A stretch of 64,000 bases of DNA from Cyanophora paradoxa CCMP329 (GCA_004431415.1 QPMI01000679.1:95197-159196); one strand, 5' to 3'; positions 21,701 to 64,000 are shown, counted from the stretch's first letter. The notes: generated from the letters alone by a model not told the origin. A program made the numbers and translations.

Positions 21701-21817
21701 TTCGTCGCACCAGCCAACGCCAACGCCTGCAGTGCGTGCCCGCCTCCCGTAGCGCTGCGAGCTTGCTCGCATAGAGATTCTCTATTCAATTGGATCGCTA
21801 GATCTGCCCCGCGCATA

Positions 21818-25300: not shown

Positions 25301-26142
25301 TCGGGCGCGTACGTATACGGGGCCTCGAGCTCGAGCTCGAGCTCGGGGAGCAGCTGCAGTCCATGGAGATCGAGAGAGCCCGACGTGTCCATTGCAATTG
25401 GCCAGCTGCAGGTATCCTCCGCGGTCGAATCCGGCGGCGGGAAGCTTGAAGCGCACGCGGCTCCGGTGCCGCGGCCGGCGCCCGCCGCGGCGCGGAGCTG
25501 ATCATGAATTCGATGCTGCTTCATGTTCAGCGCCAGCTGCAGCTGCGGGTCCAGTTCGTCGCCGCCGAGATCGCGATCCCGACCGCCATCGATGTCCAGG
25601 CCCAAGTCGAGGTCGGGCTCGAGCTCTAGATTTAGATCCATGTCGACCTCCTGCAGCTGCCCCTGCGATCCGTACACGTAGGCCCCTTCGAATTCGAATT
25701 CCGCGTTGTCTCTGCGAGGTCCCGGGCCGGGCCGGGCGTTAGCTGCGGGCACGGACGAGCCTCGCGATCGAATGCGAATGTAAATGCGCCGATCGGGGAT
25801 CTAGATCTAGATCTAGAGCGGAGGGCGGGGGCTCACTCAAGCTCCATCGGCCTGCCACGCTTGAGACTGGCCGCGCTGACGGGGGCCTGCGTGTGGCGAT
25901 CGCGATCGTGGGAGATCCCGCGCGGCCGGACGTCGACTCCGGATCCGTCGCCAGCGCTAGCCGCACTTGCAGCCGCAAATGGAGCGAGCGTTTCGAAAGC
26001 GTCCGTAGGCGAGTCCGAAGGCGCTGCTGACGGTGCGCCATGCGCATTCCCGTGCTCTTCAATTTCTAAGGCTACACCCGCCGGACCGCGGCCGGTAGAA
26101 AGGCAGGTGCCGGCCGGCGCCGGCGCCGGCAACAACGGCCGC

Positions 26143-26205
<63 letters not shown>

Positions 26206-29177: not shown

Positions 29178-29197
29178 ACGAGCCTTCTCATTGCTCG

Positions 29198-29341
29198 GCG
29201 ATCGCTTTGTGTTCGGCGCCATACCCAGCGAGTCCGACCTCTAACAAAGAGCTGCTGGGCCGGCGATCGCTTCTGGGTTCTCAGTTCTAACGGTCGCCGC
29301 GGGCTTGACGTCCACCGCCTTCTCATTGGCCAAGCGATCGC
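29198..29341. promoter_or_regulatory. Left subterminal cluster of palindromic GCGATCGC motifs (29198, 29263, 29334)
   Basis: Three copies within 165 bp of the left TIR; the third lies in an internal TIR-like copy (gccttctcattggccaagcgatcgct). Role as Myb-like protein binding sites is inferred. Confidence 0.6.
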
Positions 29342-29638
29342 TGAACTTGGATGAATGGGCAATAGGTGGTAGCCAGGTGCTGCTTGACCCCCGGTTTCTG
29401 GGCGGCGCGATCGAGGGAGTTCCTGGACACGGTTTTACTTTTACAAGCTGTGCGGAATGCATGCTCGTTGCTTTGGCGAAGAAGCGTGGTCGCTCTGGGG
29501 AGTTCTCGCGAGTGCTGGTGTTCTTCTTGGGGTACAGCTACCCCGCCAATTACCTGTACCCAGAGGAGCGCCAACGTACACTTTCAGAGCGTCCAGAGCG
29601 CCAGATACGGCATCGCATTCGCATGCTTCACGAAGGAC

Positions 29639-31508
29639 ATGGAGTTCCGTCTGCCGCCCGACCCGTTCGGGCCACCGGGACAGCCGCCTGCGCCAGCGCG
29701 GCCGTCTGAGCTTCCAGCTCCGACCTGGTGGGTTGCTGTGCTTTGAACATGCTTCTTGCTTCTTACTTGTGTCAGGCGACCGCCGGCTCCGCCGCCTCTT
29801 CGGGCCGCGCCACAAGTTCACGGGTTGAACATGCCCTCGCTCGCAGCCTCATTCAGTGCGCCCCGTACGACTTCAGTGTGCGTGAAGAACCTTTGTTTTC
29901 ACAGTTCCGCCTCATCCGGTCGCGCCCGACTGCTGTAGCTAACTTCGTCGCCGCAGTGCCGTTGCCGTTTCCATCGCTTCTGGGGCCGCCGGGCCAGAAC
30001 ATCTGGCTCGAGAAACGTGCGCTTTTGCATGCTTGACTCGCCGGTTCGCTTAAACGCGACCGCAGGCGTCCAGTCGGGCCGTCCGTGGGGAACAAGGCCG
30101 TCCCACTTGTCGCCCAGAGCTCAGTACATGGCGCCCCGTGCGCATCTCCGTGCTCCGCGTTTGTGTTTGCCATGCTTATAATGATGTTCCGCAGCGCTCC
30201 TGGCGCCCCTGCGCCGTCACTTGCTCCGCTTGCGAAGTGGGTTCTTTCCCATTTAAGCTCTTCTCTTGCACGGTTTTGCGCTGACGCGTTCGCCGGCAGG
30301 CGGGCGAAGAGCGATGACAAAGGAGCCAAGTCAGTTGCTTTCCGGTACTTTTGTCCCGACTTCCACCCTGTTCCTCGATGCACAGCCTTACTCTTCTTCC
30401 TTTTCCTTTTCACAGGTGTGACTGGATGGGCTTTCCGGCGGCTGTTACTCTCATGATCAGCTGCATCGTCGATATCGGATTGGAACTGAGGCTCAAGGAT
30501 ACCGCCAGGAACACTGTCGAAACAGATCATGTCACCCAAGCTTTCAACAAGTTTCTTGCCCAAGGTGTCCTGGTACGCTGACACGGTTGCATTTTCTTCA
30601 AGGCTTTGTCTCTGACATGCTTCCCAGCGGGACAACATCAGGCCCTTCGTCCTGGATTTGCAGGGGCTAGACATGTCGGCAGGGCGCACGAAGTTCCTCC
30701 GCAGGTGGCAGAAGGTGGTCAAGTACTACCGCATCTACAACGAAGCAGAGAAGAGCGGAAAGAAGCTCACAGATGCAGATTTCCCGTTGAACTTCCAGCT
30801 CACACCACAAGACTACATGGTACCCGTCCTGCTCTGCTCCCGACAGCGTGTTCTGGCTGATCACGACGTGATACACTAGAAAGTCAAGCCCTATCTTGAT
30901 GGTGCGCCAGAGGAGAACCCACATTACTCAATGGAGTCCGATGGAGATCGGGTTTGCGAAGATTGTGTTTTAATTCCGTACCCCCCCGTTGACTTTTTCT
31001 GCAGGATCTTCACCCAGTACCGGCTTCATGGCTCCCCTCCTCACAGCTGCAGGAGGAGGGGTCAAGCTCGAGGTGTGCACTGTCTTCCTTTCTTCTATCT
31101 CTACTGCTGCATGCCTTCAACTGATTTTCTTGCAGTTCCAGCCCCGCAAAGCCGGGGCGCCCGCCCAGGCCTGGCGAGGGGATTGCGAAGTCGCAAATCA
31201 ACAAGCGCAACCCAACTCAGGTGGCAGCTGAGGGGATGTCAAAGCTTTCAGCCAGTGTTGACCGGGTTGGAGATCAGCTCAGCCGCAGCAATGAACTTCG
31301 TGAACGGGCAGCCGAAGAGCGGGCGGCGGAGGCTAGGGAACGGGCAAAGTTCCGTCGGTTTCTGGTGCATTCTGCAACTGCTATACTCTTGCTCAGTTCT
31401 TTCTTTATTTTACCCACACAGATGGAGCAAGCTAAGAAGAAGGAGGGGCTGGACAAGCGTCCCCGTGAGCCGGGCCCAGACTCGGACCAGGAGGGGACGC
31501 TATCCTAA
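29639..31508 (+). CDS. Harbinger Myb/SANT-like (trihelix) DNA-binding protein, multi-exon
   Basis: Pro-rich start MEFRLPPDPFGPPGQPP; core CDWMGFPAAVTLMISCIVDIGLE..GRTKFLRRWQKVVKYYRIYNEAEKSGK resembles helices 1 and 3 of trihelix/MADF domains; coiled-coil C-terminus SNELRERAAEERAAEARERAK; TAA ending at 31508. Identity partly inferred from context; N-terminal exons uncertain. Confidence 0.7.
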
Positions 31509-31521
31509 CCACTGGAGGCCG

Positions 31522-33154
31522 CTACTGGAGGCCGTACAGGTGGTCCACCTGCCAGTCCCGCTCGGCCTTCGCCTCATTCTGCTCAGCTTGGTTGGGGGGG
31601 GCGTGCCCCTGTGCTGCTCCGCCCGGTGCGTCTCCCTCAGCAGCCTGGTCCAGCGGCCACACATCGTCTCCCAGCTCACAGACGTTGTGCAGTAGGAAGC
31701 ACACCTGTTCCGATGCATGTCACATATCAATCTGAAGTGCACGGTTGGTGCTTACATAGATAGTTTGGCACGCCCGACCAAGGTTCTTGCGGTTGATCCC
31801 GGCTTCAAGCTCGAGCCATCTCATCTTCAATCTTCCAAATGCTCGCTCGATGACCTTCCTGCACATTGAATGCACGAAATCAAAGTTTCTTTTTGCCAGA
31901 CCGAGGCCACCAACAATATCTGGTGGCATTTGGTCAGAACCCTTGCTGTACCCCCCCCCTTCTGTAGTACATGTGCCTCACCGTGAATGCTGTGTGGGGG
32001 AATGCATCCCTTCTCCATGCGGTACCCTCGATCAACAAGCCTGTAATCACCGTCGCTATAGATCATGTTCCGCCCCTTGTGAAGTCTTGAGTTGTCATAC
32101 ACCCTCTGATCGTGCACGCTCCCTGGATATTTAATGCTCACCTGCTTTCTCATTAGGGCGCAGTACTTGCACTCTTTCAACTCACTCACATCATTAAAAA
32201 CACCATTTGCATTGCAGGCTGCTTGAACATTCAGAGACTTCCTTCCTTTGCGACTGAAGAACTTCGTCCGATGCTGCTGAGGAGGGTTCTCGATCACGAT
32301 AAGGGTTCCATCTGAAACAAATATGCATGTCACAATGTACTCGGCACATTGCCTTCGCAAAAAAAATGCTTGCCGACAGCTCCGACACACTTGGTGAAAC
32401 CTGTCGCATAGAAGTTCCTTTTGTTCCAGTACTTTGCCAGACTCTCAAATCCAGCTCGAGCCCTGGCCTTCTGCTCTGGGGTACGCGGGAAAAGATCTTG
32501 CATATGTGTCTTTCGAAACATCTCACATATGGCTGCCTGCGTGCGGGAAAGCGCTGCAGTCGAACAACACAGTGAGGATCAAATTAAATACAGAATCGAG
32601 GTACCTCACTGAAATCAGCAAACTCACCCTCAGCAATGAAGCCCTGAGATACAGGGAAGTCTCCTTGGAGTGCTTCATAGCCTGTCCGCTGGCCAAGACG
32701 CCTCAGTGTGATTGCAAGCTGCAGTTCCACGGATTGCTGAGCAACATTCCCCCTGGACTTGTATACCCAGCTGTGCTGGATTCGATCGTGAATATACGTG
32801 AAGGTCGTCACGGTCATGCGAAAAGCCCAGAAGAATTTGGCATCGTAGTCGCCTGCGAACGAAGGCTTTTTTTTGAGGGGGGAGGAACTTGGGAGAGCTA
32901 CGCGCAGCCAACGCACCATCCACGATGCGATCAATCATCTCATGCCACCATGTGTGCATTCGCGGCTGGCGGGGACGCCTCGCCTGCGCCAGAAGCTCCG
33001 CCGCCGTAGCCGCGGCTTCAGCGATCACACCGGCGGCCTCCTCCTCGAGCTCCATAGCATCGTCCTCGTCATCATCATCGTCATCGTCGTCTAGTTCCGC
33101 TTTCGCCAGCTCGAAAAGCTCATCCAGATCGGCGTTCAGCAGCGCGTCCCCCAT
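31522..33154 (-). CDS. PIF/Harbinger DDE transposase (HARBI1/DDE_Tnp_4-like), multi-exon
   Basis: FFWAFRMTVTTF; SVELQLAITLRRLG; GFTKCVGAV(D)GTLIVI; FFSRKGRKSLNVQAACN; YPGSVHDQRVY; LVDRGY; HSMCRKVIERAFGRLKMRW; VCFLLHNVC. All three catalytic residues present. ATG at 33154. Confidence 0.95.
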
Positions 33155-33438
33155 CGCCGTCACGCGAGATCTGGTATCCCTCGCGGCCGCGGTGGGCTCC
33201 TCGGTCTTTGCTGTCGTTCTTCGGTCGTTCTTCGCGCCCTCACTTACCTCTTCGTACGGCCTCAGAGCTTCCGAGACGACGACGGCGTTGCTGGCGGTGG
33301 GCCGCGGTCGTGTGTGTGCTGGACAAGGGAGGCTTCGCTGGAAACAGGACGCCGTCGTTTCGGCGGAAAATCTCTTGCATTAGCACACAACACAACTACA
33401 ATGAGTTTCACATCGCCCAATAAATCTCTCCGACTAGA

Positions 33439-33673
33439 TACTATCGAGGACCGTCGTATGCTGTGCTTTAGAAAGTACAAAATGAACGAAAGGTTTGAAG
33501 GTTTCGTGTCTAGATATCTAGCTAAGGAGGTTTCTAACTAATACTAATGATGTGGATGTGTACTACTATCGAGGACCGTCGTATGCTGTGCTTTAGAAAG
33601 TACAAAATGAACGAAAGGTTTGAAGGTTTCGTGTCTAGATATCTAGCTAAGGAGGTTTCTAACTAATACTAAT
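33439..33673. repeat. Perfect ~110-bp direct repeat (period 125) upstream of the transposase
   Basis: tactatcgaggaccgtcgtatg...gtttctaactaatactaat at 33439-33548 and 33564-33673, AT-rich. Confidence 0.95.
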
Positions 33674-34332
33674 ACTAATACTACTAATACGACTGTCGTT
33701 TCGGCGACACAAACCCCCACTACAACGGCGCGGGTCGCGGTGCATCCCTTCCTGTCTGTCCGCTCTCACGCAGCCAACCGCCACTCATTCTTTCCTGCAC
33801 GGCCACCTCATCTGCCGTCAGGCTTTCACGGCGGTGAGCTCGACAGCATCGTCTCTTGCGCCCATCTGACGTGTCTCCGGTGCGCGGGCTGCGCTGGGGC
33901 CCGACTCTGTCCGCGCGCGCGCCGTGCTCAGCCCCGCGGCGCCACGCCCGCCCCGCAGGCGACTTCGCCGCGCCCGCGCACGCGAGGAGTACACATCGCT
34001 CGCTTCATCGGCTCACCCGCGGCGCCGGCGGCGCGCTAGCTACACGCTTTCGCTTGTCCGAGGTTCACATCATCGAATTCTGCAGCCGTCGCCCCTTCCT
34101 CGGCCGCTGTAAGGCGGCGCGCAGGGATTCGATCTCTCAACCATGGCGTCGCCCGGCGGGCCCAGCGCAAGCAGCTCTGAGTCAGTAGGTACGTCCCGGA
34201 ACCGCCCTCGGACCTGCCTGGGCGCGCTTTCTTCCGATCCTTCTAAAAAGCGTGTTTTCGGAGCGAAATTTTGGCACTATGTTCACTATGCCCGCCGGCC
34301 GTGGGCTCGGATCTGGCCGGGGCCTTTTTCAA

Positions 34333-34451
34333 GCGATCGCCGGCGCCGCGTCCGTCGTCCGACGGTTCGCGCTGGCGATCGCCCCGGAGTACTCGGTACC
34401 AGGGCCTAGCGATCGCCGGAGCGATGAGAAGGCTCTCTGACCGGCGATCGC
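34333..34451. promoter_or_regulatory. Right subterminal GCGATCGC motifs (34333, 34375, 34409) plus one just outside the TIR (34444)
   Basis: Read directly; repeated in each array unit. Function inferred. Confidence 0.6.
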
Positions 34452-34821
34452 TTGCGCAGGAGCTGCTTCAAGTTCGTCGCACCAGCCAACGCCAACGCCT
34501 GCAGTGCGTGCCCGCCTCCCGTAGCGCTGCGAGCTTGCTCGCATAGAGATTCTCTATTCAATTGGATCGCTAGATCTGCCCGCGCATAGAGCCTTCTCAT
34601 TGCTCGGCGATCGCTTTGTGTTCGGCGCCATACCCAGCGAGTCCGACCTCTAACAAAGAGCTGCTGGGCCGGCGATCGCTTCTGGGTTCTCAGTTCTAAC
34701 GGTCGCCGCGGGCTTGACGTCCACCGCCTTCTCATTGGCCAAGCGATCGCTGCTTTTCGGTGTCTTATGCCCGACTGCGCAGCATGTCGACCCCAGGAGC
34801 ACACTCTTTGGGGAGGAAGAG

Positions 34822-37800
34822 ATGGAGTGGACCTCCAGCTCATCTCCCAACCCCCTTCTGGCGGGCCGCGCGGCGGGTGGTGGCCTCGTGGGCGGCCTCG
34901 GGGCGGCTCCGGCCTTGAGCTTGTCCCCGCCCCTCCCCTCCCCGGGCCCCGCCCCTCCCCCGGCCCCGCCCCTCCCCCGGGCCCGTCCCTCCCCCGGGCC
35001 CGCCCCTCCCCCGGGCCCGTCCTCCCCCGGCCCGCCCCTCCCCCGGGCCCGCCCTCCCCCGGGCCCGCCCTCCCCCGGGCCCGCCCCTCCCCCCGCCCCC
35101 CCCCTCCCCCGGCCCGCCCTCCCCCGGGCCCGCCCCTCCCCCGGGCCCGCCCCTCCCCGGGCCGCCCTCCCCCGCCCCCCCCCTCCCCCGGCCCCGCCCC
35201 TCCCCCGGCCCGTCCCTCCCCCGGCCCCGCCCTCCCCCGGCCCGCCCCCCCCCGGCCCTGTCCCTCCCCTCCCCCCGGCCCGGTGCGCGGCGCGGGAGGC
35301 GGCGCGGGAGGCGGCGCGGGAGGCGGCGCGGGAGGCGGCGCGGGAGGCGGCACGGGAGGCGGCGCGGCGGGTGGCGCCCTGGACGGCGCAGCGGGCGGCG
35401 ACGCTGGTGGCGCTGGCAGAAGGCGACAAGCACATGCACCCTTCGAGATCTGTGCGTTTCTCTGTGAAATCTGCACGCCGCCTCTTTGTCTTATCATGTT
35501 TGCAGATCTGGACCCCCAAGTGCATTATGTGGAGGACATCATCGTCGACCTGCCCCCTGCCAGATGCTTGCGTGCACTGCGCAACCTGTTTGTGGGCACA
35601 AAGGGAGCGTTTCGAGGCCCCAAATTTCAGAGTTGTGTTGATTGGCTTGATGAGGTGCTCTGCAGCTCAAAGAATTGATCGAATGGAATCTAAGACCAAC
35701 TTATCCAGGTGACAGAAGCGGCTCGGCAAGCTCAGGCGAACGCTTGTCGGTTGCAGTTTCGAGGTGAACCAGCAAAGAACCGGACACGGACACTGGAGGA
35801 TCTCCATGCTCTGAAGCACTTCATGAGCACTGTGCGTCCTCGATCTTCTTTAGCTTGAGATTCGCCATGAGATACTGCATTTAGGTCGCACTCGAATCGC
35901 CAAGCCTTCAGCGCACCGGTCCCGACCCTCATCCAGATGCTGATATAGCTGCTGGCGACAAGGAAGATACCTCAAGCTCTTCTCAACTCGATGAGCTCAT
36001 TGATATGGACGTAAGCATCTATCTATCTTGGCCAGTTGAAGCACGGCACTCACTGCAGGCACAGTGTGCATTTCTGGGCCTTGGCGTGCCAGGGGCGCAC
36101 GGTGAGTTTGCAGTGGATACGGACCTTCGAGCCAGGCACTACGACTGGCTAAAGGCCCGGGTGACGAGCTTCTATACCAACAAGATCTACATCCGTGAGA
36201 GACGACTGCGAGAGATAGATCTGGCACGTGTCCATGCCAGCTTGCCTCGTGCTTCTTCTGCTTACTTGCTGCCCGGTCAGGTCATCTTGTCTCTGGACTT
36301 TCAGGAGGGCAAGGATGACACAAGTACTAGCGATGACAAACGATCATACGCTGTTGAATCGAAGATGTTCCTATCGCTCTGGATAGAGGTGTTCTTCTAC
36401 GGGCGATCGAGCAATTCATCACTCGATTTCTACAGTACGTCCCCTTCAAATCACTGCATTCTATTTTGAAAACCGAAATGTGATGCAGCCCCTGATGATG
36501 GCGAGATCCGCTCAGCTGCTGCTGTGCTCACACAGCTTCTGGCCCTGCGGCCAGGAGACGCTGAGTTGGACCGTGAGCCTGCACGGGCACAAGGTCTTGC
36601 AAATGCTTTCATGGAGGTGCACGATGCTTTCATGCTCTGTCTTTTCGTAACATGTTCTTAATTTTATATTAGGTCACAAACGGACAGTCTGAAATCAACC
36701 TTCTGCGTATGCAAGCGACTCTCGGGCTCAGCCAGCAAGCAATGTACCTTGGCACGAAGGAAGAAATGAAGGGCCAGTTCCGCAGTCTCGCTCAATCAGT
36801 GCACGCAGCACAGCAGCAGACACGGGAAGGCGAATCACTCCAGCTGTGGTATGCATCCGGGGGGGGGGGGGGGGCGGAGGGGGGTAAAGTTTTTTTTCTT
36901 ACCAATGGCGACGCAGGCTTCATGCATGTGTGGAGCTTGCAGCAGCAGCTGCAGAGGCCGCGTTGGTGGAAGAGTTGCCACGTGGGAAAGGGCGGAAGCG
37001 CAAGGCGCAGGACGATCTCGTGTCGTACCCGGAGGTGAAGAAGCTTCTTCGGAAGTGCAACGCGTACGGAGGCAACAGGGATGTCGGTCGTGGCGGCAAG
37101 ATTGCAAGCGATGTGCAGGTCCTGCAGGCTGTTCGGAAGAGCGGCAAGGAGCTTCTTCGCCTTCTTGCAGGGCCGGCAAGCAGCATATCAGTCGGCATTA
37201 TCTTCTCAGACCTTGTCCGCAAATCGCGTTTTCGGCGGTGGGCGACAATTGCCAACCAGCTCATATTCAAAGGCCTTGTAGATCTAGCCAAGGCATTCGA
37301 CGACGAGGAGCACGGCAACGCAAGGCGGGCGCGAGCAGCGTGGGAGGCCGCGCGGCAAGCAGGTCAAGACCCAGGCCCGGCTCCCGAACAGGCGCCAAGT
37401 CCAATGGAGGTTCGACTACCCCCCCCTCCAACCCCCCTCCCCTTCGCTACGCGTACCCCCCCCCCCCCGACACGTGGAGCTGATGCGCGTACCCTGCCGT
37501 TCTCCACAGGCGTGCCACGAGGCAATGGGAAACCCTGCCGTTCTCCACCACGAAGCGCCGGCGAACGAGCTCTTCACCCGGCTGCGCATGAAGCCAGAGC
37601 TGGCGGTGCGTGCGAGGGGTACGAAGACGACGCCACAGAAGGGGTTACTGAACTCTAATTCCGGTGCAGGAGAAATACGGTACAGGTCGCGCAGCGGAGA
37701 ACAGCTTTCAGGCTCTGAAGCAAGTGGCTGCAGTGCTGGAACAGATGGGCTCCAAGTCAGATGTTCTAACACACCGGATGCTGAATGGGGGCAACGACTC

Positions 37801-38974
37801 TGGAGAGGAGTACCCCGAGGTGGACGAACTCGGCGCGACGGCATACAGGAGAACTACACGGAAAGTCCAACAGGTACGAGCAACGGTTATCGCAAATGCT
37901 CAAGCTCACGAGAAACTCAGCCAAACGGCGCGGGACAATTGGTCGATGTGGACATCGATGTTGAGGCGTATGTGCCTCCGCCATACACGAGGCGAAACAA
38001 GCCTCTATGGCTAGGCACACCTGAGCGGCCTATTCCGACACCCATCCTGTCCTGCTTGTACAGACGGTCCGCGTACCCCCCTTCTCTTTTCTTTCTTTTC
38101 CTTTGTTTCTTTTCCTTCTTATTTCCCTTCTCCCGCTGAACGTGCTCTGACTTGGGCGCGTCGCAGCGTGGCGAACACCGAGAACCGATACTTCAACGCG
38201 CTGAGCAATACCCTGAAGGCGAAACTGCACTGGTTCCCTGCAATGTCACGGGAGGAAGGAGGCTCCAGATCGGTACGGGGGAGCATCGCCGTGGTCGCAA
38301 CCGCGATACGGGACGCGAGGGCAGCGAGCCCCGCAGCACGTGCGTACGTCGAGAAGCTGGCTCGCCTACCGCCAAACGACGGTGCACTGGAGTGCACGGC
38401 CACGCAAGGTGCCGCGCGCTGCAGCGTCTCCAGTCAAGTGCACCGGCTTGATGTACCGGGAACAACACCGGAGGCAACAATGGTTATCCTCCGGGGCTTC
38501 ACCAATCTCGAGTGGGACCACTGGCCGTGCGCCTCTTCCTTTTTCTACTTGTGGTTTCCTTTTTTCTGTCCATGGATATCAGTAACCACTCTTGCTGATT
38601 GCCTCGAGCTCATATATATCACGAGCAGAGTCACCATCAAGAGTCACGCCGCTGCATTAGTGCAGGCCCTCCTTCAGCTCTCGGAGCCTGTGCATGATAT
38701 GACCTTCCACACGACCGCTGGCTCCATCTTCAAGGCAAGATGCCGAGCTGACCGCGTGCTCGAGATTCTTTTCTCGCCTCGATGGGGTCGGGTGGTATGC
38801 GCCGGGCACCACCAGCGCAGCCCAATGGACTGCGCACCATTTGTTGCGGTTGCGAAAGAATGGTTCCGCAAGCCGCTAGTGGCCGAGGAGGATCGGTTTG
38901 CTGACCCAGGTAGACTAGATGAGCTAGTGGAGCGGTGCAAGCAGTTTGTAGGGCCGCAGTTGAACTTCCAGTGA
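34822..38974 (+). CDS. Large intron-containing cargo protein of unknown function (roughly 1000+ aa) with N-terminal (PPGPAP)n and (GGGA)n repeats
   Basis: Exons join largely in frame through about 11-12 short introns: MEWTSS..; LDPQVHYVEDIIVDLPPARCLRALRNLF..DWLDE | VTEAARQ..HFMST | VALESP..LIDMD | AQCAFLG..; WLHACVELAAAAAEAALVEE..PSPME | ACHEAMG..; EKYGTG..RKVQQ | PNGAGQLVDVDIDVEAYVPPP..; VANTENRYFNAL..EWDHWP | VTIKSH..GPQLNFQ*. Alternative start at 34767. Confidence 0.75.
34926..35370 (+). repeat. C-rich 18-bp repeat (cccgggcccgcccctccc) followed by 12-bp repeat (ggcgcgggaggc); present in each array unit
   Basis: Unit lengths are multiples of 3, compatible with Pro-rich and Gly-rich coding; run-length differences between copies look like sequencing error. 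Confidence 0.9.
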
Positions 38975-39846
38975 GCGTAGAGTTCTTGAGCGCCTTGCAA
39001 TTTTGTGGAGCAAGTCAAATTTCGTCGATGTACCCCAGAGCCTTCGCTTTTAAGCCACCGAGCCCCCAAGTTTAGGGGGGAATGAGTCGGGGGGTACCCC
39101 GACCTTCGAAAGTGAGGCGCGCGGCGTCGACGCAAAGCTCGCGCAAAGCTCGCGCATAGCGCTTCGCAGCGCGCGCGCCGTGCTCAGCCCCGCGGCGCCA
39201 CGCCCGCCCCGCAGGCGACTTCGCCGCGCCCGCGCACGCGAGGAGTACACATCGCTCGCTTCATCGGCTCACCCGCGGCGCCGGCGGCGCGCTAGCTACA
39301 CGCTTTCGCTTGTCCGAGGTTCACATCATCGAATTCTGCAGCCGTCGCCCCTTCCTCGGCCGCTGTAAGGCGGCGCGCAGGGATTCGATCTCTCAACCAT
39401 GGCGTCGCCCGGCGGGCCCAGCGCAAGCAGCTCTGAGTCAGTAGGTACGTCCCGGAACCGCCCCTCGGACCTGCCTGGGCGCGCTTTCTTCCGATCCTTC
39501 TAAAAAGCGTGTTTTCGGAGCGAAATTTTGGCACTATGTTCACTATGCCCGCCGGCCGTGGGCTCGGATCTGGCCGGGGCCTTTTTCAAGCGATCGCCGG
39601 CGCCGCGTCCGTCGTCCGACGGTTCGCGCTGGCGATCGCCCCGGAGTACTCGGTACCAGGGCCTAGCGATCGCCGGAGCGATGAGAAGGCTCTCTGACCG
39701 GCGATCGCTTGCGCAGGAGCTGCTTCAAGTTCGTCGCACCAGCCAACGCCAACGCCTGCAGTGCGTGCCCGCCTCCCGTAGCGCTGCGAGCTTGCTCGCA
39801 TAGAGATTCTCTATTCAATTGGATCGCTAGATCTGCCCCGCGCATA

Positions 39847-44956: not shown

Positions 44957-45110
44957 TCTGACCGGCGATCGCTTGCGCAGGAGCTGCTTCAAGTTCGTCG
45001 CACCAGCCAACGCCAACGCCTGCAGTGCGTGCCCGCCTCCCGTAGCGCTGCGAGCTTGCTCGCATAGAGATTCTCTATTCAATTGGATCGCTAGATCTGC
45101 CCCGCGCATA

Positions 45111-50223: not shown

Positions 50224-50377
50224 TCTGACCGGCGATCGCTTGCGCAGGAGCTGCTTCAAGTTCGTCGCACCAGCCAACGCCAACGCCTGCAGTGCGTGCC
50301 CGCCTCCCGTAGCGCTGCGAGCTTGCTCGCATAGAGATTCTCTATTCAATTGGATCGCTAGATCTGCCCCGCGCATA

Positions 50378-53300: not shown

Positions 53301-55488
53301 TCTCCACAGGCGTGCCACGAGGCAATGGGAAACCCTGCCGTTCTCCACCACGAAGCGCCGGCGAACGAGCTCTTCACCCGGCTGCGCATGAAGCCAGAGC
53401 TGGCGGTGCGTGCGAGGGGTACGAAGACGACGCCACAGAAGGGGTTACTGAACTCTAATTCCGGTGCAGGAGAAATACGGTACAGGTCGCGCAGCGGAGA
53501 ACAGCTTTCAGGCTCTGAAGCAAGTGGCTGCAGTGCTGGAACAGATGGGCTCCAAGTCAGATGTTCTAACACACCGGATGCTGAATGGGGCAACGACTCT
53601 GGAGAGGAGTACCCCGAGGTGGACGAACTCGGCGCGACGGCATACAGGAGAACTACACGGAAAGTCCAACAGGTACGAGCAACGGTTATCGCAAATGCTC
53701 AAGCTCACGAGAAACTCAGCCAAACGGCGCGGGACAATTGGTCGATGTGGACATCGATGTTGAGGCGTATGTGCCTCCGCCATACACGAGGCGAAACAAG
53801 CCTCTATGGCTAGGCACACCTGAGCGGCCTATTCCGACACCCATCCTGTCCTGCTTGTACAGACGGTCCGCGTACCCCCCTTCTCTTTTCTTTCTTTTCC
53901 TTTGTTTCTTTTCCTTCTTATTTCCCTTCTCCCGCTGAACGTGCTCTGACTTGGGCGCGTCGCAGCGTGGCGAACACCGAGAACCGATACTTCAACGCGC
54001 TGAGCAATACCCTGAAGGCGAAACTGCACTGGTTCCCTGCAATGTCACGGGAGGAAGGAGGCTCCAGATCGGTACGGGGAGCATCGCCGTGGTCGCAACC
54101 GCGATACGGGACGCGAGGGCAGCGAGCCCCGCAGCACGTGCGTACGTCGAGAAGCTGGCTCGCCTACCGCCAAACGACGGTGCACTGGAGTGCACGGCCA
54201 CGCAAGGTGCCGCGCGCTGCAGCGTCTCCAGTCAAGTGCACCGGCTTGATGTACCGGGAACAACACCGGAGGCAACAATGGTTATCCTCCGGGGCTTCAC
54301 CAATCTCGAGTGGGACCACTGGCCGTGCGCCTCTTCCTTTTTCTACTTGTGGTTTCCTTTTTCTGTCCATGGATATCAGTAACCACTCTTGCTGATTGCC
54401 TCGAGCTCATATATATCACGAGCAGAGTCACCATCAAGAGTCACGCCGCTGCATTAGTGCAGGCCCTCCTTCAGCTCTCGGAGCCTGTGCATGATATGAC
54501 CTTCCACACGACCGCTGGCTCCATCTTCAAGGCAAGATGCCGAGCTGACCGCGTGCTCGAGATTCTTTTCTCGCCTCGATGGGGTCGGGTGGTATGCGCC
54601 GGGCACCACCAGCGCAGCCCAATGGACTGCGCACCATTTGTTGCGGTTGCGAAAGAATGGTTCCGCAAGCCGCTAGTGGCCGAGGAGGATCGGTTTGCTG
54701 ACCCAGGTAGACTAGATGAGCTAGTGGAGCGGTGCAAGCAGTTTGTAGGGCCGCAGTTGAACTTCCAGTGAGCGTAGAGTTCTTGAGCGCCTTGCAATTT
54801 TGTGGAGCAAGTCAAATTTCGTCGATGTACCCCAGAGCCTTCGCTTTTAAGCCACCGAGCCCCAAGTTTAGGGGGGAATGAGTCGGGGGGTACCCCGACC
54901 TTCGAAAGTGAGGCGCGCGGCGTCGACGCAAAGCTCGCGCAAAGCTCGCGCATAGCGCTTCGCAGCGCGCGCGCCGTGCTCAGCCCCGCGGCGCCACGCC
55001 CGCCCCGCAGGCGACTTCGCCGCGCCCGCGCACGCGAGGAGTACACATCGCTCGCTTCATCGGCTCACCCGCGGCGCCGGCGGCGCGCTAGCTACACGCT
55101 TTCGCTTGTCCGAGGTTCACATCATCGAATTCTGCAGCCGTCGCCCCTTCCTCGGCCGCTGTAAGGCGGCGCGCAGGGATTCGATCTCTCAACCATGGCG
55201 TCGCCCGGCGGGCCCAGCGCAAGCAGCTCTGAGTCAGTAGGTACGTCCCGGAACCGCCCCTCGGACCTGCCTGGGCGCGCTTTCTTCCGATCCTTCTAAA
55301 AAGCGTGTTTTCGGAGCGAAATTTTGGCACTATGTTCACTATGCCCGCCGGCCGTGGGCTCGGATCTGGCCGGGGCCTTTTTCAAGCGATCGCCGGCGCC
55401 GCGTCCGTCGTCCGACGGTTCGCGCTGGCGATCGCCCCGGAGTACTCGGTACCAGGGCCTAGCGATCGCCGGAGCGATGAGAAGGCTC
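50378..55488 (+). mobile_element. Non-autonomous Harbinger cargo element, unit 4 (cargo stop at 54771)
   Basis: Near-identical to unit 1 with a few 1-nt deletions. Confidence 0.9.
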
Positions 55489-55642
55489 TCTGACCGGCGA
55501 TCGCTTGCGCAGGAGCTGCTTCAAGTTCGTCGCACCAGCCAACGCCAACGCCTGCAGTGCGTGCCCGCCTCCCGTAGCGCTGCGAGCTTGCTCGCATAGA
55601 GATTCTCTATTCAATTGGATCGCTAGATCTGCCCCGCGCATA

Positions 55643-58600
55643 GAGCCTTCTCATTGCTCGGCGATCGCTTTGTGTTCGGCGCCATACCCAGCGAGTCCGA
55701 CCTCTAACAAAGAGCTGCTGGGCCGGCGATCGCTTCTGGGTTCTCAGTTCTAACGGTCGCCGCGGGCTTGACGTCCACCGCCTTCTCATTGGCCAAGCGA
55801 TCGCTGCTTTTCGGTGTCTTATGCCCGACTGCGCAGCATGTCGACCCCAGGAGCACACTCTTTGGGAGGAAGAGATGGAGTGGACCTCCAGCTCATCTCC
55901 CAACCCCCTTCTGGCGGGCCGCGCGGCGGGTGGTGGCCTCGTGGGCGGCCTCGGGGGCGGCTCCGGCCTTGAGCTTGTCCCCGCCCCTCCCCTCCCCCGG
56001 GCCCCGCCCCTCCCCCGGCCCGCCCCTCCCCCGGGCCCGTCCCTCCCCCCGGGCCCGCCCTCCCCCCGGGCCCGTCCCTCCCCCGGCCCCGCCCTCCCCC
56101 GGGCCCGCCCCTCCCCCGGGCCCGCCCCTCCCCCGGCCCGCCCCTCCCCCCGCCCCCCCCTCCCCCCGGCCCGCCCCTCCCCCGGGCCCGCCCTCCCCCG
56201 GGCCGCCCCTCCCCCGGGCCCGCCCCTCCCCCGCCCCCCCCCTCCCCCGGCCCCGCCCCTCCCCCGGGCCCGTCCCTCCCCCGGCCCCGCCCCTCCCCCG
56301 GGCCCGCCCCCCCCCGGCCCTGTCCCTCCCCTCCCCCGGCCCGGTGCGCGGCGCGGGAGGCGGCGCGGAGGCGGCGCGGGAGGCGGCGCGGGAGGCGGCG
56401 CGGGAGGCGGCACGGGAGGCGGCGCGGCGGGTGGCGCCCTGGACGGCGCAGCGGGCGGCGACGCTGGTGGCGCTGGCAGAAGGCGACAAGCACATGCACC
56501 CTTCGAGATCTGTGCGTTTCTCTGTGAAATCTGCACGCCGCCTCTTTGTCTTATCATGTTTGCAGATCTGGACCCCCAAGTGCATTATGTGGAGGACATC
56601 ATCGTCGACCTGCCCCCTGCCAGATGCTTGCGTGCACTGCGCAACCTGTTTGTGGGCACAAAGGGAGCGTTTCGAGGCCCCAAATTTCAGAGTTGTGTTG
56701 ATTGGCTTGATGAGGTGCTCTGCAGCTCAAAGAATTGATCGAATGGAATCTAAGACCAACTTATCCAGGTGACAGAAGCGGCTCGGCAAGCTCAGGCGAA
56801 CGCTTGTCGGTTGCAGTTTCGAGGTGAACCAGCAAAGAACCGGACACGGACACTGGAGGATCTCCATGCTCTGAAGCACTTCATGAGCACTGTGCGTCCT
56901 CGATCTTCTTTAGCTTGAGATTCGCCATGAGATACTGCATTTAGGTCGCACTCGAATCGCCAAGCCTTCAGCGCACCGGTCCCGACCCTCATCCAGATGC
57001 TGATATAGCTGCTGGCGACAAGGAAGATACCTCAAGCTCTTCTCAACTCGATGAGCTCATTGATATGGACGTAAGCATCTATCTATCTTGGCCAGTTGAA
57101 GCACGGCACTCACTGCAGGCACAGTGTGCATTTCTGGGCCTTGGCGTGCCAGGGGCGCACGGTGAGTTTGCAGTGGATACGGACCTTCGAGCCAGGCACT
57201 ACGACTGGCTAAAGGCCCGGGTGACGAGCTTCTATACCAACAAGATCTACATCCGTGAGAGACGACTGCGAGAGATAGATCTGGCACGTGTCCATGCCAG
57301 CTTGCCTCGTGCTTCTTCTGCTTACTTGCTGCCCGGTCAGGTCATCTTGTCTCTGGACTTTCAGGAGGGCAAGGATGACACAAGTACTAGCGATGACAAA
57401 CGATCATACGCTGTTGAATCGAAGATGTTCCTATCGCTCTGGATAGAGGTGTTCTTCTACGGGCGATCGAGCAATTCATCACTCGATTTCTACAGTACGT
57501 CCCCTTCAAATCACTGCATTCTATTTTGAAAACCGAAATGTGATGCAGCCCCTGATGATGGCGAGATCCGCTCAGCTGCTGCTGTGCTCACACAGCTTCT
57601 GGCCCTGCGGCCAGGAGACGCTGAGTTGGACCGTGAGCCTGCACGGGCACAAGGTCTTGCAAATGCTTTCATGGAGGTGCACGATGCTTTCATGCTCTGT
57701 CTTTTCGTAACATGTTCTTAATTTATATTAGGTCACAAACGGACAGTCTGAAATCAACCTTCTGCGTATGCAAGCGACTCTCGGGCTCAGCCAGCAAGCA
57801 ATGTACCTTGGCACGAAGGAAGAAATGAAGGGCCAGTTCCGCAGTCTCGCTCAATCAGTGCACGCAGCACAGCAGCAGACACGGGAAGGCGAATCACTCC
57901 AGCTGTGGTATGCATCCGGGGGGGGGGGGGGGGCGGAGGGGGGGTAAAGTTTTTTTTCTTACCAATGGCGACGCAGGCTTCATGCATGTGTGGAGCTTGC
58001 AGCAGCAGCTGCAGAGGCCGCGTTGGTGGAAGAGTTGCCACGTGGGAAAGGGCGGAAGCGCAAGGCGCAGGACGATCTCGTGTCGTACCCGGAGGTGAAG
58101 AAGCTTCTTCGGAAGTGCAACGCGTACGGAGGCAACAGGGATGTCGGTCGTGGCGGCAAGATTGCAAGCGATGTGCAGGTCCTGCAGGCTGTTCGGAAGA
58201 GCGGCAAGGAGCTTCTTCGCCTTCTTGCAGGGCCGGCAAGCAGCATATCAGTCGGCATTATCTTCTCAGACCTTGTCCGCAAATCGCGTTTTCGGCGGTG
58301 GGCGACAATTGCCAACCAGCTCATATTCAAAGGCCTTGTAGATCTAGCCAAGGCATTCGACGACGAGGAGCACGGCAACGCAAGGCGGGCGCGAGCAGCG
58401 TGGGAGGCCGCGCGGCAAGCAGGTCAAGACCCAGGCCCGGCTCCCGAACAGGCGCCAAGTCCAATGGAGGTTCGACTACCCCCCCCTCCAACCCCCCTCC
58501 CCCTTCGCTACGCGTACCCCCCCCCCCCCGACACGTGGAGCTGATGCGCGTACCCTGCCGTTCTCCACAGGCGTGCCACGAGGCAATGGAAACCCTGCCG

Positions 58601-60721
58601 TTCTCCACCACGAAGCGCCGGCGAACGAGCTCTTCACCCGGCTGCGCATGAAGCCAGAGCTGGCGGTGCGTGCGAGGGTACGAAGACGACGCCACAGAAG
58701 GGTTACTGAACTCTAATTCCGGTGCAGGAGAAATACGGTACAGGTCGCGCAGCGGAGAACAGCTTTCAGGCTCTGAAGCAAGTGGCTGCAGTGCTGGAAC
58801 AGATGGGCTCCAAGTCAGATGTTCTAACACACCGGATGCTGAATGGGGCAACGACTCTGGAGAGGAGTACCCCGAGGTGGACGAACTCGGCGCGACGGCA
58901 TACAGGAGAACTACACGGAAAGTCCAACAGGTACGAGCAACGGTTATCGCAAATGCTCAAGCTCACGAGAAACTCAGCCAAACGGCGCGGGACAATTGGT
59001 CGATGTGGACATCGATGTTGAGGCGTATGTGCCTCGCCATACACGAGGCGAAACAAGCCTCTATGGCTAGGCACACCTGAGCGGCCTATTCCGACACCCA
59101 TCCTGTCCTGCTTGTACAGACGGTCCGCGTACCCCCTTCTCTTTTCTTTCTTTTCCTTGTTTCTTTTCCTTCTTATTTCCCTTCTCCCGCTGAACGTGCT
59201 CTGACTTGGCGCGTCGCAGCGTGGCGAACACCGAGAACCGATACTTCAACGCGCTGAGCAATACCCTGAAGGCGAAACTGCACTGGTTCCCTGCAATGTC
59301 ACGGGAGGAAGGAGGCTCCAGATCGGTACGGGGAGCATCGCCGTGGTCGCAACCGCGATACGGACGCGAGGGCAGCGAGCCCCGCAGCACGTGCGTACGT
59401 CGAGAAGCTGGCTCGCCTACCGCCAAACGACGGTGCACTGGAGTGCACGGCCACGCAAGGTGCCGCGCGCTGCAGCGTCTCCAGTCAAGTGCACCGGCTT
59501 GATGTACCGGAACAACACCGGAGGCAACAATGGTTATCCTCCGGGGCTTCACCAATCTCGAGTGGACACTGCCGTGCGCCTCTTCTTTTTCTACTTGTGG
59601 TTTCCTTTTTTCTGTCCATGGATATCAGTAACCACTCTTGCTGATTGCCTCGAGCTCATATATATCACGAGCAGAGTCACCATCAAGAGTCACGCCGCTG
59701 CATTAGTGCAGGCCCTCCTTCAGCTCTCGGAGCCTGTGCATGATATGACCTTCCACACGACCGCTGGCTCCATCTTCAAGGCAAGATGCCGAGCTGACCG
59801 CGTGCTCGAGATTCTTTTCTCGCCTCGATGGGGTCGGGTGGTATGCGCCGGGCACCACCAGCGCAGCCCAATGGACTGCGCACCATTTGTTGCGGTTGCG
59901 AAAGAATGGTTCCGCAAGCCGCTAGTGGCCGAGGAGGATCGGTTTGCTGACCCAGGTAGACTAGATGAGCTAGTGGAGCGGTGCAAGCAGTTTGTAGGGC
60001 CGCAGTTGAACTTCCAGTGAGCGTAGAGTTCTTGAGCGCCTTGCAATTTTGTGGAGCAAGTCAAATTTCGTCGATGTACCCCAGAGCCTTCGCTTTTAAG
60101 CCACCGAGCCCCCAAGTTTAGGGGGGAATGAGTCGGGGGGTACCCCGACCTTCGAAAGTGAGGCGCGCGGCGTCGACGCAAAGCTCGCGCAAAGCTCGCG
60201 CATAGCGCTTCGCAGCGCGCGCGCCGTGCTCAGCCCGCGGCGCCACGCCCGCCCCGCAGGCGACTTCGCCGCGCCCGCGCACGCGAGGAGTACACATCGC
60301 TCGCTTCATCGGCTCACCCGCGGCGCCGGCGGCGCGCTAGCTACACGCTTTCGCTTGTCCGAGTTCACATCATCGAATTCTGCAGCCGTCGCCCTTCCTC
60401 GCCGCTGTAAGGCGGCGCGCAGGGATTCGATCTCTCAACCATGGCGTCGCCGGCGGGCCAGCGCAAGCAGCTCTGAGTCAGTAGGTACGTCCGGAACCGC
60501 CCTCGGACTGCCTGGGCGCGCTTTCTTCCGATCCTTCTAAAAAGCGTGTTTTCGGAGCGAAATTTTGGCACTATGTCACTATGCCGCCGCCGTGGCTCGG
60601 ATCTGGCCGGGCCTTTTTCAAGCGATCGCCGGCGCCGCGTCGTCGTCCGACGGTTCGCGCTGGCGATCGCCCGGAGTACTCGGTACAGGGCCTAGCGATC
60701 GCCGGAGCGATGAGAAGGCTC
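55643..60721 (+). mobile_element. Non-autonomous Harbinger cargo element, unit 5 (cargo stop at 60020)
   Basis: Same sequence with many 1-nt deletions in its second half. Confidence 0.88.
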
Positions 60722-60875
60722 TCTGACCGGCGATCGCTTGCGCAGGAGCTGCTTCAAGTTCGTCGCACCAGCCAACGCCAACGCCTGCAGTGCGTGCCCG
60801 CCTCCCGTAGCGCTGCGAGCTTGCTCGCATAGAGATTCTCTATTCAATTGGATCGCTAGATCTGCCCCGCGCATA

Positions 60876-63800
60876 GAGCCTTCTCATTGCTCGGCGATCG
60901 CTTTGTGTTCGGCGCCATACCCAGCGAGTCCGACCTCTAACAAAGAGCTGCTGGGCCGGCGATCGCTTCTGGGTTCTCAGTTCTAACGGTCGCCGCGGGC
61001 TTGACGTCCACCGCCTTCTCATTGGCCAAGCGATCGCTGCTTTTCGGTGTCTTATGCCCGACTGCGCAGCATGTCGACCCAGGAGCACACTCTTTGGGAG
61101 GAAGAGATGGAGTGGACCTCCAGCTCATCTCCCAACCCCCTTCTGGCGGCCGCGCGGCGGTGGTGGCCTCGTGGGCGCCTCGGGGCGGCTCCGGCCTTGA
61201 GCTTGTTCCCGCCCCTCCCCCTCCCCCGGGCCCCCGCCCCCCCGGCCCGCCTCCCGCCCCTCCCTCCCCGGCCCGCCCTCCCCCGGGCCCCTCCCCCCGG
61301 GCCCGCCTCCCCCGGCCCGCCCCTCCCCGGCCCGCCCTCCCCCGGGCCCGCCCCTCCCCGCCGCCCCTCCCCCGGCCCCGCCCTCCCCCGGCCCGCCCCT
61401 CCCCCCGGGCCCGCCCTCCCCCGGGCCGCCCTCCCCCCGCCTCCCCGCCCCCCCCTCCCCCGGCCCCGCCCTCCCCCCGGGCCCGTCCCTCCCCCCGCCC
61501 GCCCCTCCCCCGGGCCCGCCCCCCCCCGGCCCTGTCCCTCCCCCTCCCCGGCCCGGTGCGCGGCGCGGGAGGCGGCCGGGGAGGCGGCGCGGGAGCGGCG
61601 CGGGAGCGGCGCGGGAGGCGGCACGGGAGGCGGCGCGGCGGGTGGCGCCCTGGACGGCGCAGCGGGCGGCGACGCTGGTGGCGCTGGCAGAAGGCGACAA
61701 GCACATGCACCCTTCGAGATCTGTGCGTTTCTCTGTGAAATCTGCACGCCGCCTCTTTGTCTTATCATGTTTGCAGATCTGGACCCCCAGTGCATTATGT
61801 GGGGACATCATCGTCGACCTGCCCCCTGCCAGATGCTTGCGTGCACTGCGCAACCTGTTTGTGGGCACAAAGGGAGCGTTTCGAGGCCCCAAATTTCAGA
61901 GTTGTGTTGATTGGCTTGATGAGGTGCTCTGCAGCTCAAAGAATTGATCGAATGGAATCTAAGACCAACTTATCCAGGTGACAGAAGCGGCTCGGCAAGC
62001 TCAGGCGAACGCTTGTCGGTTGCAGTTTCGAGTGAACCAGCAAAGACCGGACACGGACACTGGAGGATCTCCATGCTCTGAAGCACTTCATGAGCACTGT
62101 GCGTCCTCGATCTTCTTTAGCTTGAGATTCGCCATGAAGATACTGCATTTAGGTCGCACTCGAATCGCCAAGCCTTCAGCGCACCGGTCCCGACCCTCAT
62201 CCAGATGCTGATATAGCTGCTGGCGACAAGGAAGATACCTCAAGCTCTTCTCAACTCGATGAGCTCATTGATATGGACGTAAGCATCTATCTATCTTGGC
62301 CAGTTGAAGCACGGCACTCACTGCAGGCACAGTGTGCATTTCTGGGCCTTGGCGTGCCAGGGGCGCACGGTGAGTTTGCAGTGGATACGGACCTTCGAGC
62401 CAGGCACTACGACTGGCTAAAGGCCCGGGTGACGAGCTTCTATACCAACAAGATCTACATCGTGAGAGACGACTGCGAGAGATAGATCTGGCACGTGTCC
62501 ATGCCAGCTTGCCTCGTGCTTCTTCTGCTTACTTGCTGCCCGGTCAGGTCATCTTGTCTCTGGACTTTCAGGAGGGCAAGGATGACACAAGTACTAGCGA
62601 TGACAAACGATCATACGCTGTTGAATCGAAGATGTTCCTATCGCTCTGGATAGAGGTGTTCTTCTACGGGCGATCGAGCAATTCATCACTCGATTTCTAG
62701 TACGTCCCTTCAAATCACTGCATTCTATTTTGAAAACCGAAATGTGATGCAGCCCCTGATGATGGCGAGATCCGCTCAGCTGCTGCTGTGCTCACACAGC
62801 TTCTGGCCCTGCGGCCAGGAGACGCTGAGTTGGACCGTGAGCCTGCACGGGCACAAGGTCTTGCAAATGCTTTCATGGAGGTGCACGATGCTTTCATGCT
62901 CTGTCTTTTCGTAACATGTTCTTAATTTTATATTAGGTCACAAACGGACAGTCTGAAATCAACCTTCTGCGTATGCAAGCGACTCTCGGGCTCAGCCAGC
63001 AAGCAATGTACCTTGGCACGAAGGAAGAAATGAAGGGCCAGTTCCGCAGTCTCGTCAATCAGTGCACGCAGCACAGCAGCGACACGGGAAGGCGAATCAC
63101 TCCAGCTGTGGTATGCATCCGGGGGGGGGGGGGGCGGAGGGGGGGTAAAGTTTTTTTTCTTACCAATGGCGACGCAGGCTTCATGCATGTGTGGAGCTTG
63201 CAGCAGCAGCTGCAGAGGCCGCGTTGGTGGAAGAGTTGCCACGTGGAAAGGGCGAAGCGCAAGGCGCAGGACGATCTCGTGTCGTACCCGGAGGTGAAGA
63301 AGCTTCTTTCGGAAGTGCAACGCGTACGGAGGCAAAGGATGTCGGTCGTGGCGGCAAGATTGCAAGCGATGTGCAGGTCCTGCAGGCTGTTCGGAGAGCG
63401 CAAGGAGCTTCTTCGCCTTCTTGCAGGGCCGGCAACAGCATATCAGTCGGCATTATCTTCTCAGACCTTGTCCGCAAATCGCGTTTTCGGCGGTGGCGAC
63501 AATTGCCAACCAGCTCATATTCAAAGGCCTTGTAGATCTAGCCAAGGCATTCGACGACCGAGGAGCACACGGCAACGCAAGGCGGGCGCGAGCAGCGTGG
63601 GAGGCCGCGCGGCAAGCAGGTCAAGACCCAGGCCCGGCTCCGAACAGGCGCCAAGTCCAATGGAGGTTCGACTACCCCCCCTCCAACCCCCCTCCCCTTC
63701 GCTACGCGTACCCCCCCCCCCCCGACACGTGGAGCTGATGCGCGTACCCTGCCGTTCTCCACAGGCGTGCCACGAGGCAATGGGAAACCCTGCCGTTCTC

Positions 63801-64000
63801 CACCACGAAGCGCCGGCGAACGAGCTCTTCACCCGGCTGCGCATGAAGCCAGAGCTGGCGGTGCGTGCGAGGGTACGAAGACGACGCCACAGAAGGGGTT
63901 ACTGAACTCTAATTCCGGTCAGGAGAAATACGGTACAGGTCGCGCAGCGGAGAACAGCTTTCAGGCTCTGAAGCAAGTGGCTGCAGTGCTGGAACAGATG
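60876..64000 (+). mobile_element. Non-autonomous Harbinger cargo element, unit 6 (partial, runs off the right edge)
   Basis: Left TIR at 60876, same interior, many indels. Confidence 0.88.

Follow-up and report, generated by a model that had tools for sequence, protein, structure and literature searches.

The window analysed here, a stretch of 64,000 nucleotides from the glaucophyte Cyanophora paradoxa CCMP329 (GCA_004431415.1, QPMI01000679.1:95197-159196), ends in a row of 5.1-kb elements which stand head-to-tail behind a transposase-bearing element with the same ends. How are these two kinds of element related, and how did the row come to be built? An original prediction, made from the sequence alone, had described a Harbinger helper followed by a gene-carrying satellite which is mobilised in trans. 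Our analysis makes it rather probable that this is a family of the PIF/Harbinger (PHIS) superfamily which exists in two same-ended forms, an autonomous element (E1) and a partner (E2), and that the array grew by duplication of an element together with its spacer.

Harbinger-type elements serve as a model for two-protein cut-and-paste transposition. Their usual non-autonomous partners are tiny, non-coding MITEs (miniature inverted-repeat transposable elements), whereas E2 is full-sized, carries a conserved orphan gene and is arrayed beside its presumed helper. Were E2 mobilised in trans, it would be a natural case of a DNA transposon family dividing its genes between two vehicles. A literature search returned nothing on Harbinger elements or such arrays in glaucophytes.

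Two elements with the same ends

Self-BLAST and exact searches for the element tips gave the following order between 14827 and 64000 (Table 1): a host-side flank block (X), a spacer, a 522-bp fragment of the E2 left end, X again, E1, five repeats of spacer plus E2, and a sixth E2 cut by the end of the window. The left tips (GAGCCTTCTCAT) begin at the seven element starts, and the right tips end at the six element ends, listed in the table. E1 measures 5,256 bp between its repeat tips, the five complete E2 elements 5,079-5,113 bp, and the period of the array is 5,233-5,267 bp. The original prediction of at least six elements of approximately 5.1 kb behind the transposase element agrees with these five complete units and the truncated sixth. 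It did not mention that the units do not abut, a spacer of 153-154 bp standing between all of them, nor that the upstream left-end fragment lies inside a 7.5-kb tandem duplication.

Alignment of E1 with E2 gave 100% identity over the left 164 bp, with the break just after the third copy of the octamer GCGATCGC, and identity except for one 1-base indel over the right 523 bp, with the break at GCGCGCGCGCCGTGC. Both breakpoints between end and interior are abrupt, and the two interiors are unrelated, tblastx and blastn returning noise only. These are the same lengths (164 bp and about 523 bp, around a different interior) that had been predicted. Derivation of E2 from E1 by deletion or rearrangement was considered and rejected, since the interiors share nothing.

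The tips, AGAGCCTTCTCAT and ATGAGAAGGCTCT, are perfect inverted repeats of each other over 13 bp. If one mismatch and one gap are allowed, the similarity continues to 27-28 bp, as far as the first GCGATCGC, and the inverted arms comprise 26 nt at 85% complementarity. By exact search the tips are present at 7/7 left and 6/6 right borders within the window; the claim that every array unit keeps both terminal inverted repeats thus holds. Where 4.6 copies of the octamer would be expected in the window, 60 are present, or seven per period, with three at each end, the first lying 18-19 bp from the tip on either side, and a seventh at the start of the spacer. The bases which surround it (CCG-GCGATCGC-TT) are mirror-imaged between the two ends, and the termini of E2 include all six subterminal motifs of E1. 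The left tip of E1 reads ACGAGCC and that of E2 AGAGCC.

E1 contains two convergent genes. The transposase gene, read on the minus strand in some seven exons, matches Pfam DDE_Tnp_4 (PF13359) in the exons at 31830-32390 (E=2.3e-15) and 31723-31977 (E=3.6e-4), and E1 thus possesses both the catalytic domain and the terminal inverted repeats of the PIF/Harbinger superfamily. Its introns have GT-AG borders, with one GC-AG. On the minus strand the motifs follow each other in the order CVGAV/DGTLIV (the first D spans the splice site), GSVHD, LVDRGY (the second D), VIERAFG / VIERAFGRLKMRW (the E) and, near the C-terminus, LLHNVC. A further stretch, FFWAFRM...F, we take to be the N-terminal helix-turn-helix typical of the transposase family. 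The gene reads through apart from one frame break within a run of nine G residues (31951-31959) between the second D and the E, where one extra G restores the frame. A homopolymer miscall seems more likely than a genuine lesion, because the errors in this contig are mainly losses of single bases from homopolymers. A 125-bp tandem duplication upstream of the start sits in the likely promoter region of this gene.

The second gene has open frames and canonical GT-AG borders, with exons at 30416-30572, 30664-30819, 31005-31072, 31136 to about 31365 and about 31422-31505, followed by a TAA stop at 31506-31508; its start is uncertain, ATG 30172 being one option. In two exons of 52 codons the reading resembles a Myb/SANT/trihelix domain with its three helices (W-MGF...TLMI..., ...VTQAFNKFL..., ...GRTKFLRRWQKVVKYYRIY...SGKK), with a helix pattern of W...W...Y; W..., RRWQKVVKYY. 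Searches of the single exons against Pfam, PDB sequences and a protein language-model atlas were all blank, and the putative Myb/SANT-like assignment is a call at the level of pattern. Of the transposase and Myb-like genes that had been predicted, the former is accordingly upheld by its DDE_Tnp_4 domain, and the latter found no match in any tool exon by exon. The second gene is probably the DNA-binding helper of E1. The two stops lie 13 bp apart (31508 and 31522), as a consequence of which the 3' untranslated regions of the two genes must overlap around 31506-31524. Overlapping shared untranslated regions are a feature of the C. paradoxa genome (PMC6704402).

E2 carries a single multi-exon gene, hereafter the cargo gene. 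In unit 1 exons were read at 35506-35654, 35709-35831 and from 35885 onwards, and the C-terminal half is confirmed exon by exon by C. paradoxa gene models and by a diverged paralogue, in agreement with the one large spliced gene foreseen for the array units. The models P0002, P0003, P0012 and P0013 match at 97-100% identity; the paralogue, P0001 (tig00000821), at approximately 38-72% within exons and 39% over a read-through open reading frame. The conserved blocks comprise YV.PPYTRRNK..W.GT.ERPIP; LYRRVANTENR...TLKAKLH.FPAM.REE; NLEWDHWP; and C-R.DRV.E.LFSP.WGR.VC..HH.R.P..C.PF, the last of which is invariant across three subfamilies.

A full HMMER pass with P0001 alone as query against 1.84 billion representatives returned, at E<=0.001, nine proteins in all. 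C. paradoxa models account for six (EukProt records EP00741_Cyanophora_paradoxa with tig* gene names from the 2019 PacBio assembly, in independent agreement with the origin of the window), two are Logan assembly fragments with no organism recorded, which belong to a third, more distant subfamily, and one is a weak ENA record, again with no organism recorded. With cluster members included, the family is found on at least 12 contigs. The cargo protein is therefore restricted to C. paradoxa records plus three unattributed assembly matches, has diverged paralogues, and is a real, diversified orphan gene. Its diversification favours a long-standing gene over a captured scrap.

Pfam searches with seven exon pieces and five gene models were blank, with no DDE match in the exons, apart from one sub-threshold LETM2_N match on one model, and the PDB sequence search was also blank. 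AlphaFold models of the C-terminal half and of the last exon had predicted local distance difference test (pLDDT) values of 45 and 42, respectively. The atlas gave weak leads to fungal DUF6698/DUF6532, under its own reliability marks. A SUMO/NEDD8-protease-like end of the cargo protein was not supported. Word searches with the N-terminal cargo exon and with a transposase exon were blank within their length limits, as were metagenome scans by tip sequence and by protein.

Ahead of the cargo exons each E2 carries some 20 copies of the 17-bp microsatellite CCCGCCCCTCCCCCGGG, which are followed by six copies of GGCGCGGGAGGC (34925-35350 in unit 1, with an equivalent in each unit). The length of the microsatellite differs between units and shifts the reading frame, which rules out that it encodes the N-terminus of the cargo. 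The joint of the 7.5-kb duplication (22339) falls in this microsatellite, which may be prone to recombination. Within the cargo region a G-rich run of up to 16 G (36857-36884), variable between units, forms imperfect inverted repeats with the C-rich microsatellite.

Since every E2 retains both inverted repeats, has the termini of E1 and lacks a transposase of its own, it is formally a non-autonomous, gene-carrying partner which the E1 proteins would be expected to recognise. These proteins would bind the GCGATCGC motifs and the tips, and could excise E2, or several units together, in trans; such mobilisation is plausible. Of the gene-carrying Harbinger satellite originally proposed, the same-ended, transposase-free and cargo-bearing partner stands.

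The pair resembles the two-gene PIF/Harbinger elements Ping and Pong with mPing in having a DDE_Tnp_4 transposase and a second gene in one element, short inverted tips, repeated subterminal motifs, and an enzyme-less partner with the same ends, although in E1 the second gene is Myb/SANT-like by pattern only. In contrast to that system, E2 is as long as the autonomous copy and has an intact orphan gene of its own, being neither a MITE nor a deletion derivative; the Cyanophora family is without the 3-bp TWA duplication; and its partners stand in a uniform tandem array. Pack-MULE-type elements are non-autonomous DNA transposons which carry host-gene fragments as coding cargo. Like E2 they hold coding cargo between borrowed ends, but the cargo of E2 is a full multi-exon gene, the named relatives of which are all other C. 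paradoxa models in diverged subfamilies. An extra protein-coding gene beyond those for transposition is also found in PHISTA (TET/JBP) and HarbingerS (SET domain) elements (PMC12730594); there, however, it resides inside the autonomous element and specifies a known enzymatic domain, whereas here it is on a same-ended partner and has no recognisable domain.

Insertion of E1 and the target site

That E1 is a discrete unit of insertion is shown by the 7.5-kb duplication (14827-22339, repeated from 22339), in which the 17-bp microsatellite of an E2 is joined to the start of X with a microhomology of 2-3 bp. The two copies of X (the second at 22339-29177) are 99.93% identical across 6,841 bp. After copy 1 the sequence runs ...cctacgcgaat/ctgaccggcgatcgc..., straight into the spacer; after copy 2 it runs ...cctacgcgaat-AC-GAGCC[E1]GGCTC-T-ctgaccggcgatcgc.... 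E1 is present in one paralogous site and missing from the other, and the difference starts and stops at the repeat tips, which shows that E1 is bordered by them and that, following a duplication of very recent date, it either entered or left one of the two copies. Paralogous empty sites of this kind have been used to define target sites in the PHIS superfamily (PMC4122938).

The 3-bp target duplications that had been anticipated were not observed. There is none at any border or at the empty site, which represents one event, and at most 1 bp (T) is ambiguous. Sliding the borders by -2 to +2 bases and comparing the flanks with TWA, AT, TA, ANT, CWG and C/TNA/G gave no fit. On the left, E1 and E2 have similar flanks (CGCGAATA and CGCGCATA), and on the right both are followed by the beginning of the spacer; a target preference or microhomology may lie behind this likeness and behind the differing left tips.

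As judged from this single event, E1 thus lacks the TWA duplication of PIF/Harbinger sensu stricto. PHIS members with 0-, 2- and 3-bp duplications are known (PMC4482050, PMC12730594), the 0-bp relatives among the Harbinger kin being described in PMC4122938, and for this reason we place E1 away from canonical Harbinger but still inside the superfamily. Elements of the Spy group, known from invertebrates, insert at AAA/TTT and have a single open reading frame (PMC4122938). Like E1 they have been shown by a paralogous empty site to insert without duplication; E1, by comparison, lies at GAAT/CTGA in its one event and has two genes, and does not belong to the Spy group. Few PHIS elements are known to insert without target duplication, and the empty site suggests that E1, with two genes, may be a further one.

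A number of points count against the interpretation of E1 and E2 as a Harbinger-type pair. The missing TWA duplication departs from canonical Harbinger, and the sharing of CGCG[A/C]ATA on the left of E1 and E2, together with the same right flank, hints at target specificity or at borders which have been misunderstood. The break in the G run of the transposase could be a real inactivating mutation instead of a miscall. Pfam was blank for each exon of the helper, the Myb/SANT identity of which is putative. The 523-bp right end far exceeds what binding motifs need, which suggests another function. Lastly, the 64-kb window contains no solitary E2 copy and no E2 empty site.

Growth of the array

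The spacers are identical in all units apart from one C. With the microsatellite excluded, the differences among units 1-4 over 4.85 kb amount to 1-6 substitutions plus a small number of single-base indels, and the units are ≥99.8% identical. Since the same spacer stands between all units and the units themselves are identical, the sequence points to duplication of element plus spacer, and not to a string of independent insertions. The gaps are as uniform as the elements, a pattern expected from slippage or unequal exchange. Coral CMITE arrays likewise consist of complete, repeat-bounded elements lying head-to-tail with highly similar gaps, and their identical gaps have been read as slippage rather than transposition (PMC2872659); CMITEs, however, are short, non-coding and piggyBac-related, whereas the units of E2 are 5.1 kb long and carry a gene.

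We envisage that one E2 and the 153-154 bp next to it formed a 5.26-kb period, which was multiplied through unequal sister-chromatid exchange or replication slippage, that the same process would have kept the array uniform, and that serial transposition would have had no part in its origin. The neighbouring 7.5-kb duplication, with its joint in the microsatellite of the element, shows that events of the unequal-exchange type do occur at this locus.

The spacer is not ordinary host DNA. It starts with a left-type motif (CCGGCGATCGCTTG) and holds the left tip and the adjoining flank in degenerate form (CGCATAGAGATTCTCTATTC...GGATCGCT), and may derive from an old end fragment. At 34538-34552 it contains a 15-bp palindrome, ATAGAGATTCTCTAT, in which the bases that open the left tip are combined with their reverse complement; this palindrome may be a footprint-like relic.

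Construction of the array by transposition, either through repeated site-specific insertion at CGCG[A/C]AT/CTGACCGG or through the movement of trains of several units, the two outer tips of which belong to different units and are the points of cutting, appears unlikely. The flanks are indeed nearly identical (left CGCGAATA against CGCGCATA, right TCTGACCGG), PHIS groups have a strong target preference, the Spy group inserts without duplication, and cargo genes are spread over those 12 or more contigs. A duplication-free insertion, however, regenerates no target, and serial insertion would require that spacer monomers had already stood in a row, of which there is no sign. X was tried as a degenerate monomer of this kind and rejected; only its last 7-8 bases are similar, and the local alignment score was 19 against a shuffle mean of 17. 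Many of the cargo contigs, moreover, may be unresolved pieces of the same few arrays.

The divergence of the units rises toward the end of the window. Relative to units 1-4, unit 5 has 34 single-base deletions against 3 insertions and unit 6 has 32 against 6, and across the six units 58 of 77 single-base deletions (75%) adjoin an identical base. The assembly was made from PacBio RSII reads and corrected by mapping of Illumina reads, uncovered stretches keeping the PacBio sequence (PMC6704402). Because the deletions are mostly homopolymeric and raw PacBio sequence was kept where coverage was lacking, the divergence of units 5 and 6 is best read as assembly error, the true divergence being about zero. 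The copy number is not reliable, since the array continues past the end of the window and units 5 and 6 bear deletions of the error type.

These same features, along with the identity of units 1-4, the ending of the window inside the array, the correction of PacBio RSII sequence only where Illumina reads mapped, and the many short tig contigs bearing the same gene, could be taken to mean that assembly produced the array, or at any rate made it as long and as uniform as it is, by building a consensus where a repeat at the end of a contig had been collapsed or extended too far. We consider this quite improbable. A period of 5.26 kb fits within single PacBio reads, so that the joints of right end, spacer and left end, and that of E1 with E2, must exist in real molecules, and the microsatellite lengths vary from unit to unit. 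Such an artefact would in any case touch the copy number and not the architecture.

It is very improbable that element and spacer formed an extrachromosomal circle, that rolling-circle replication turned this into a concatemer, and that the concatemer was re-integrated. Uniform units and spacers would follow from such a process, and at X copy 1 the left edge of the array coincides exactly with the outer side of a right tip (X/spacer), where a transposase would be expected to cut a concatemer. Against this, there is no replication-initiator gene present and no evidence of a circle, and unequal exchange covers the same facts by a mechanism which is visible next door in the 7.5-kb duplication.

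A candidate transcript across the border

The length of the conserved right end, well past the binding motifs, raises the possibility that the working unit is not the element but the 5.26-kb period. Under this proposal the right end would hold an outward promoter and a short first exon, and this exon would be spliced to exon 2 of the following unit, over the right tip and the spacer and then over the left end and microsatellite of that unit; the cargo would then be expressed only from head-to-tail units, and selection would maintain the array. We regard this as tentative; it is compatible with growth of the array by duplication of element plus spacer. In every unit the right end contains an ATG in strong context (aaccATGG, at 34143 in E1), 15 codons and then a donor AG/GTACGT, and E2 has an acceptor, tgtttgcag/, at 35505, the phases of which fit (G + AT = Asp). 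The frame through the microsatellite differs by unit (offsets of 917, 925, 925, 927 and 923), which implies that the stretch upstream of the acceptor is non-coding. A phase match has, however, a one-in-three chance of arising fortuitously, the implied intron would be 1,317 bp long, whereas the remaining introns that were read span 53-185 bp, and an in-frame ATG at 35496 could start the cargo gene inside E2. In addition, no right end lies upstream of the plus-strand gene of E1 in the window, and the two acceptors checked there are out of phase.

If true, a transcript of this kind would explain both the identical 523-bp right end and the persistence of the array, and would tie the expression of a transposon gene to tandem arrangement. 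To our knowledge such a coupling has not been described for eukaryotic DNA transposons. Its fullest form, which we consider rather doubtful, is a three-component system of the Harbinger superfamily, in which the third, family-specific gene has a same-ended partner element to itself and its transcription starts in the right end of the unit before it, so that head-to-tail arrays would be needed; integration would occur without duplication at a preferred site of the CGCGMAT/CTGACC type, and the array would be an adaptive, operon-like state and no mere accident of recombination.

Table 1. Positions of the features in the window, counted from its first nucleotide
Feature	Position	Strand	Remarks
Flank block X, copy 1	14827..21664		host-side, low-complexity; right edge 21664/21665 is the empty site; self-BLAST, junction read
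Spacer 'a' directly abutting X	21665..21817	+	cgcgaat/ctgacc...; same sequence as the in-array spacers
Truncated E2 left end	21818..22339	+	164-bp shared end and some of the 17-bp microsatellite; truncated at the joint of the 7.5-kb duplication with X copy 2
Flank block X, copy 2	22339..29177		right edge bears E1 (filled site); self-BLAST
E1, autonomous-type element	29180..34435	+	tip searches, alignments
E1 shared left end	29180..29343	+	GCGATCGC at 29198, 29263, 29334
E1 second gene, putative DNA-binding helper	30172..31508	+	
E1 transposase gene	31522..33154	-	ATG 33154 to TAG 31522; Pfam DDE_Tnp_4, strand read
125-bp tandem duplication	33439..33673		1.9 copies, 100% identical
E1 shared right end	33913..34435	+	GCGATCGC at 34333, 34375, 34409
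Candidate outward-facing first exon in right end	34143..34188	+	sequence reading
Spacer 'a'	34436..34588; repeats 39693-39846, 44957-45110, 50224-50377, 55489-55642, 60722-60875	+	tip searches
E2 unit 1, cargo element	34589..39692	+	tip search, alignment
17-bp microsatellite, unit 1	34925..35269		
Cargo gene, E2 unit 1	35506..38974	+	stop 38972-38974; conserved C-terminal half 37507-38974
E2 unit 2	39847..44956	+	tip search, alignment
E2 unit 3	45111..50223	+	tip search, alignment
E2 unit 4	50378..55488	+	tip search, alignment
E2 unit 5	55643..60721	+	
E2 unit 6, cut by window end	60876..64000	+	deletions counted in 2.75 kb

No known RNAs or tRNAs were found in 14000-40000. The GC content is approximately 70% on the left (host) side of the window and 55-60% within the elements; the right half of X (18000-22000 and 26000-29000), at 56-59%, is element-like in this respect when compared with the host DNA further left. 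The host-side DNA also contains, at 12589-13152, 3.2 copies of a 176-bp tandem repeat which are 98% identical and have an internal GC-rich period of 40 bp. A 339-bp inverted repeat of 89.7% identity is located at 98-429 and 4882-5213.

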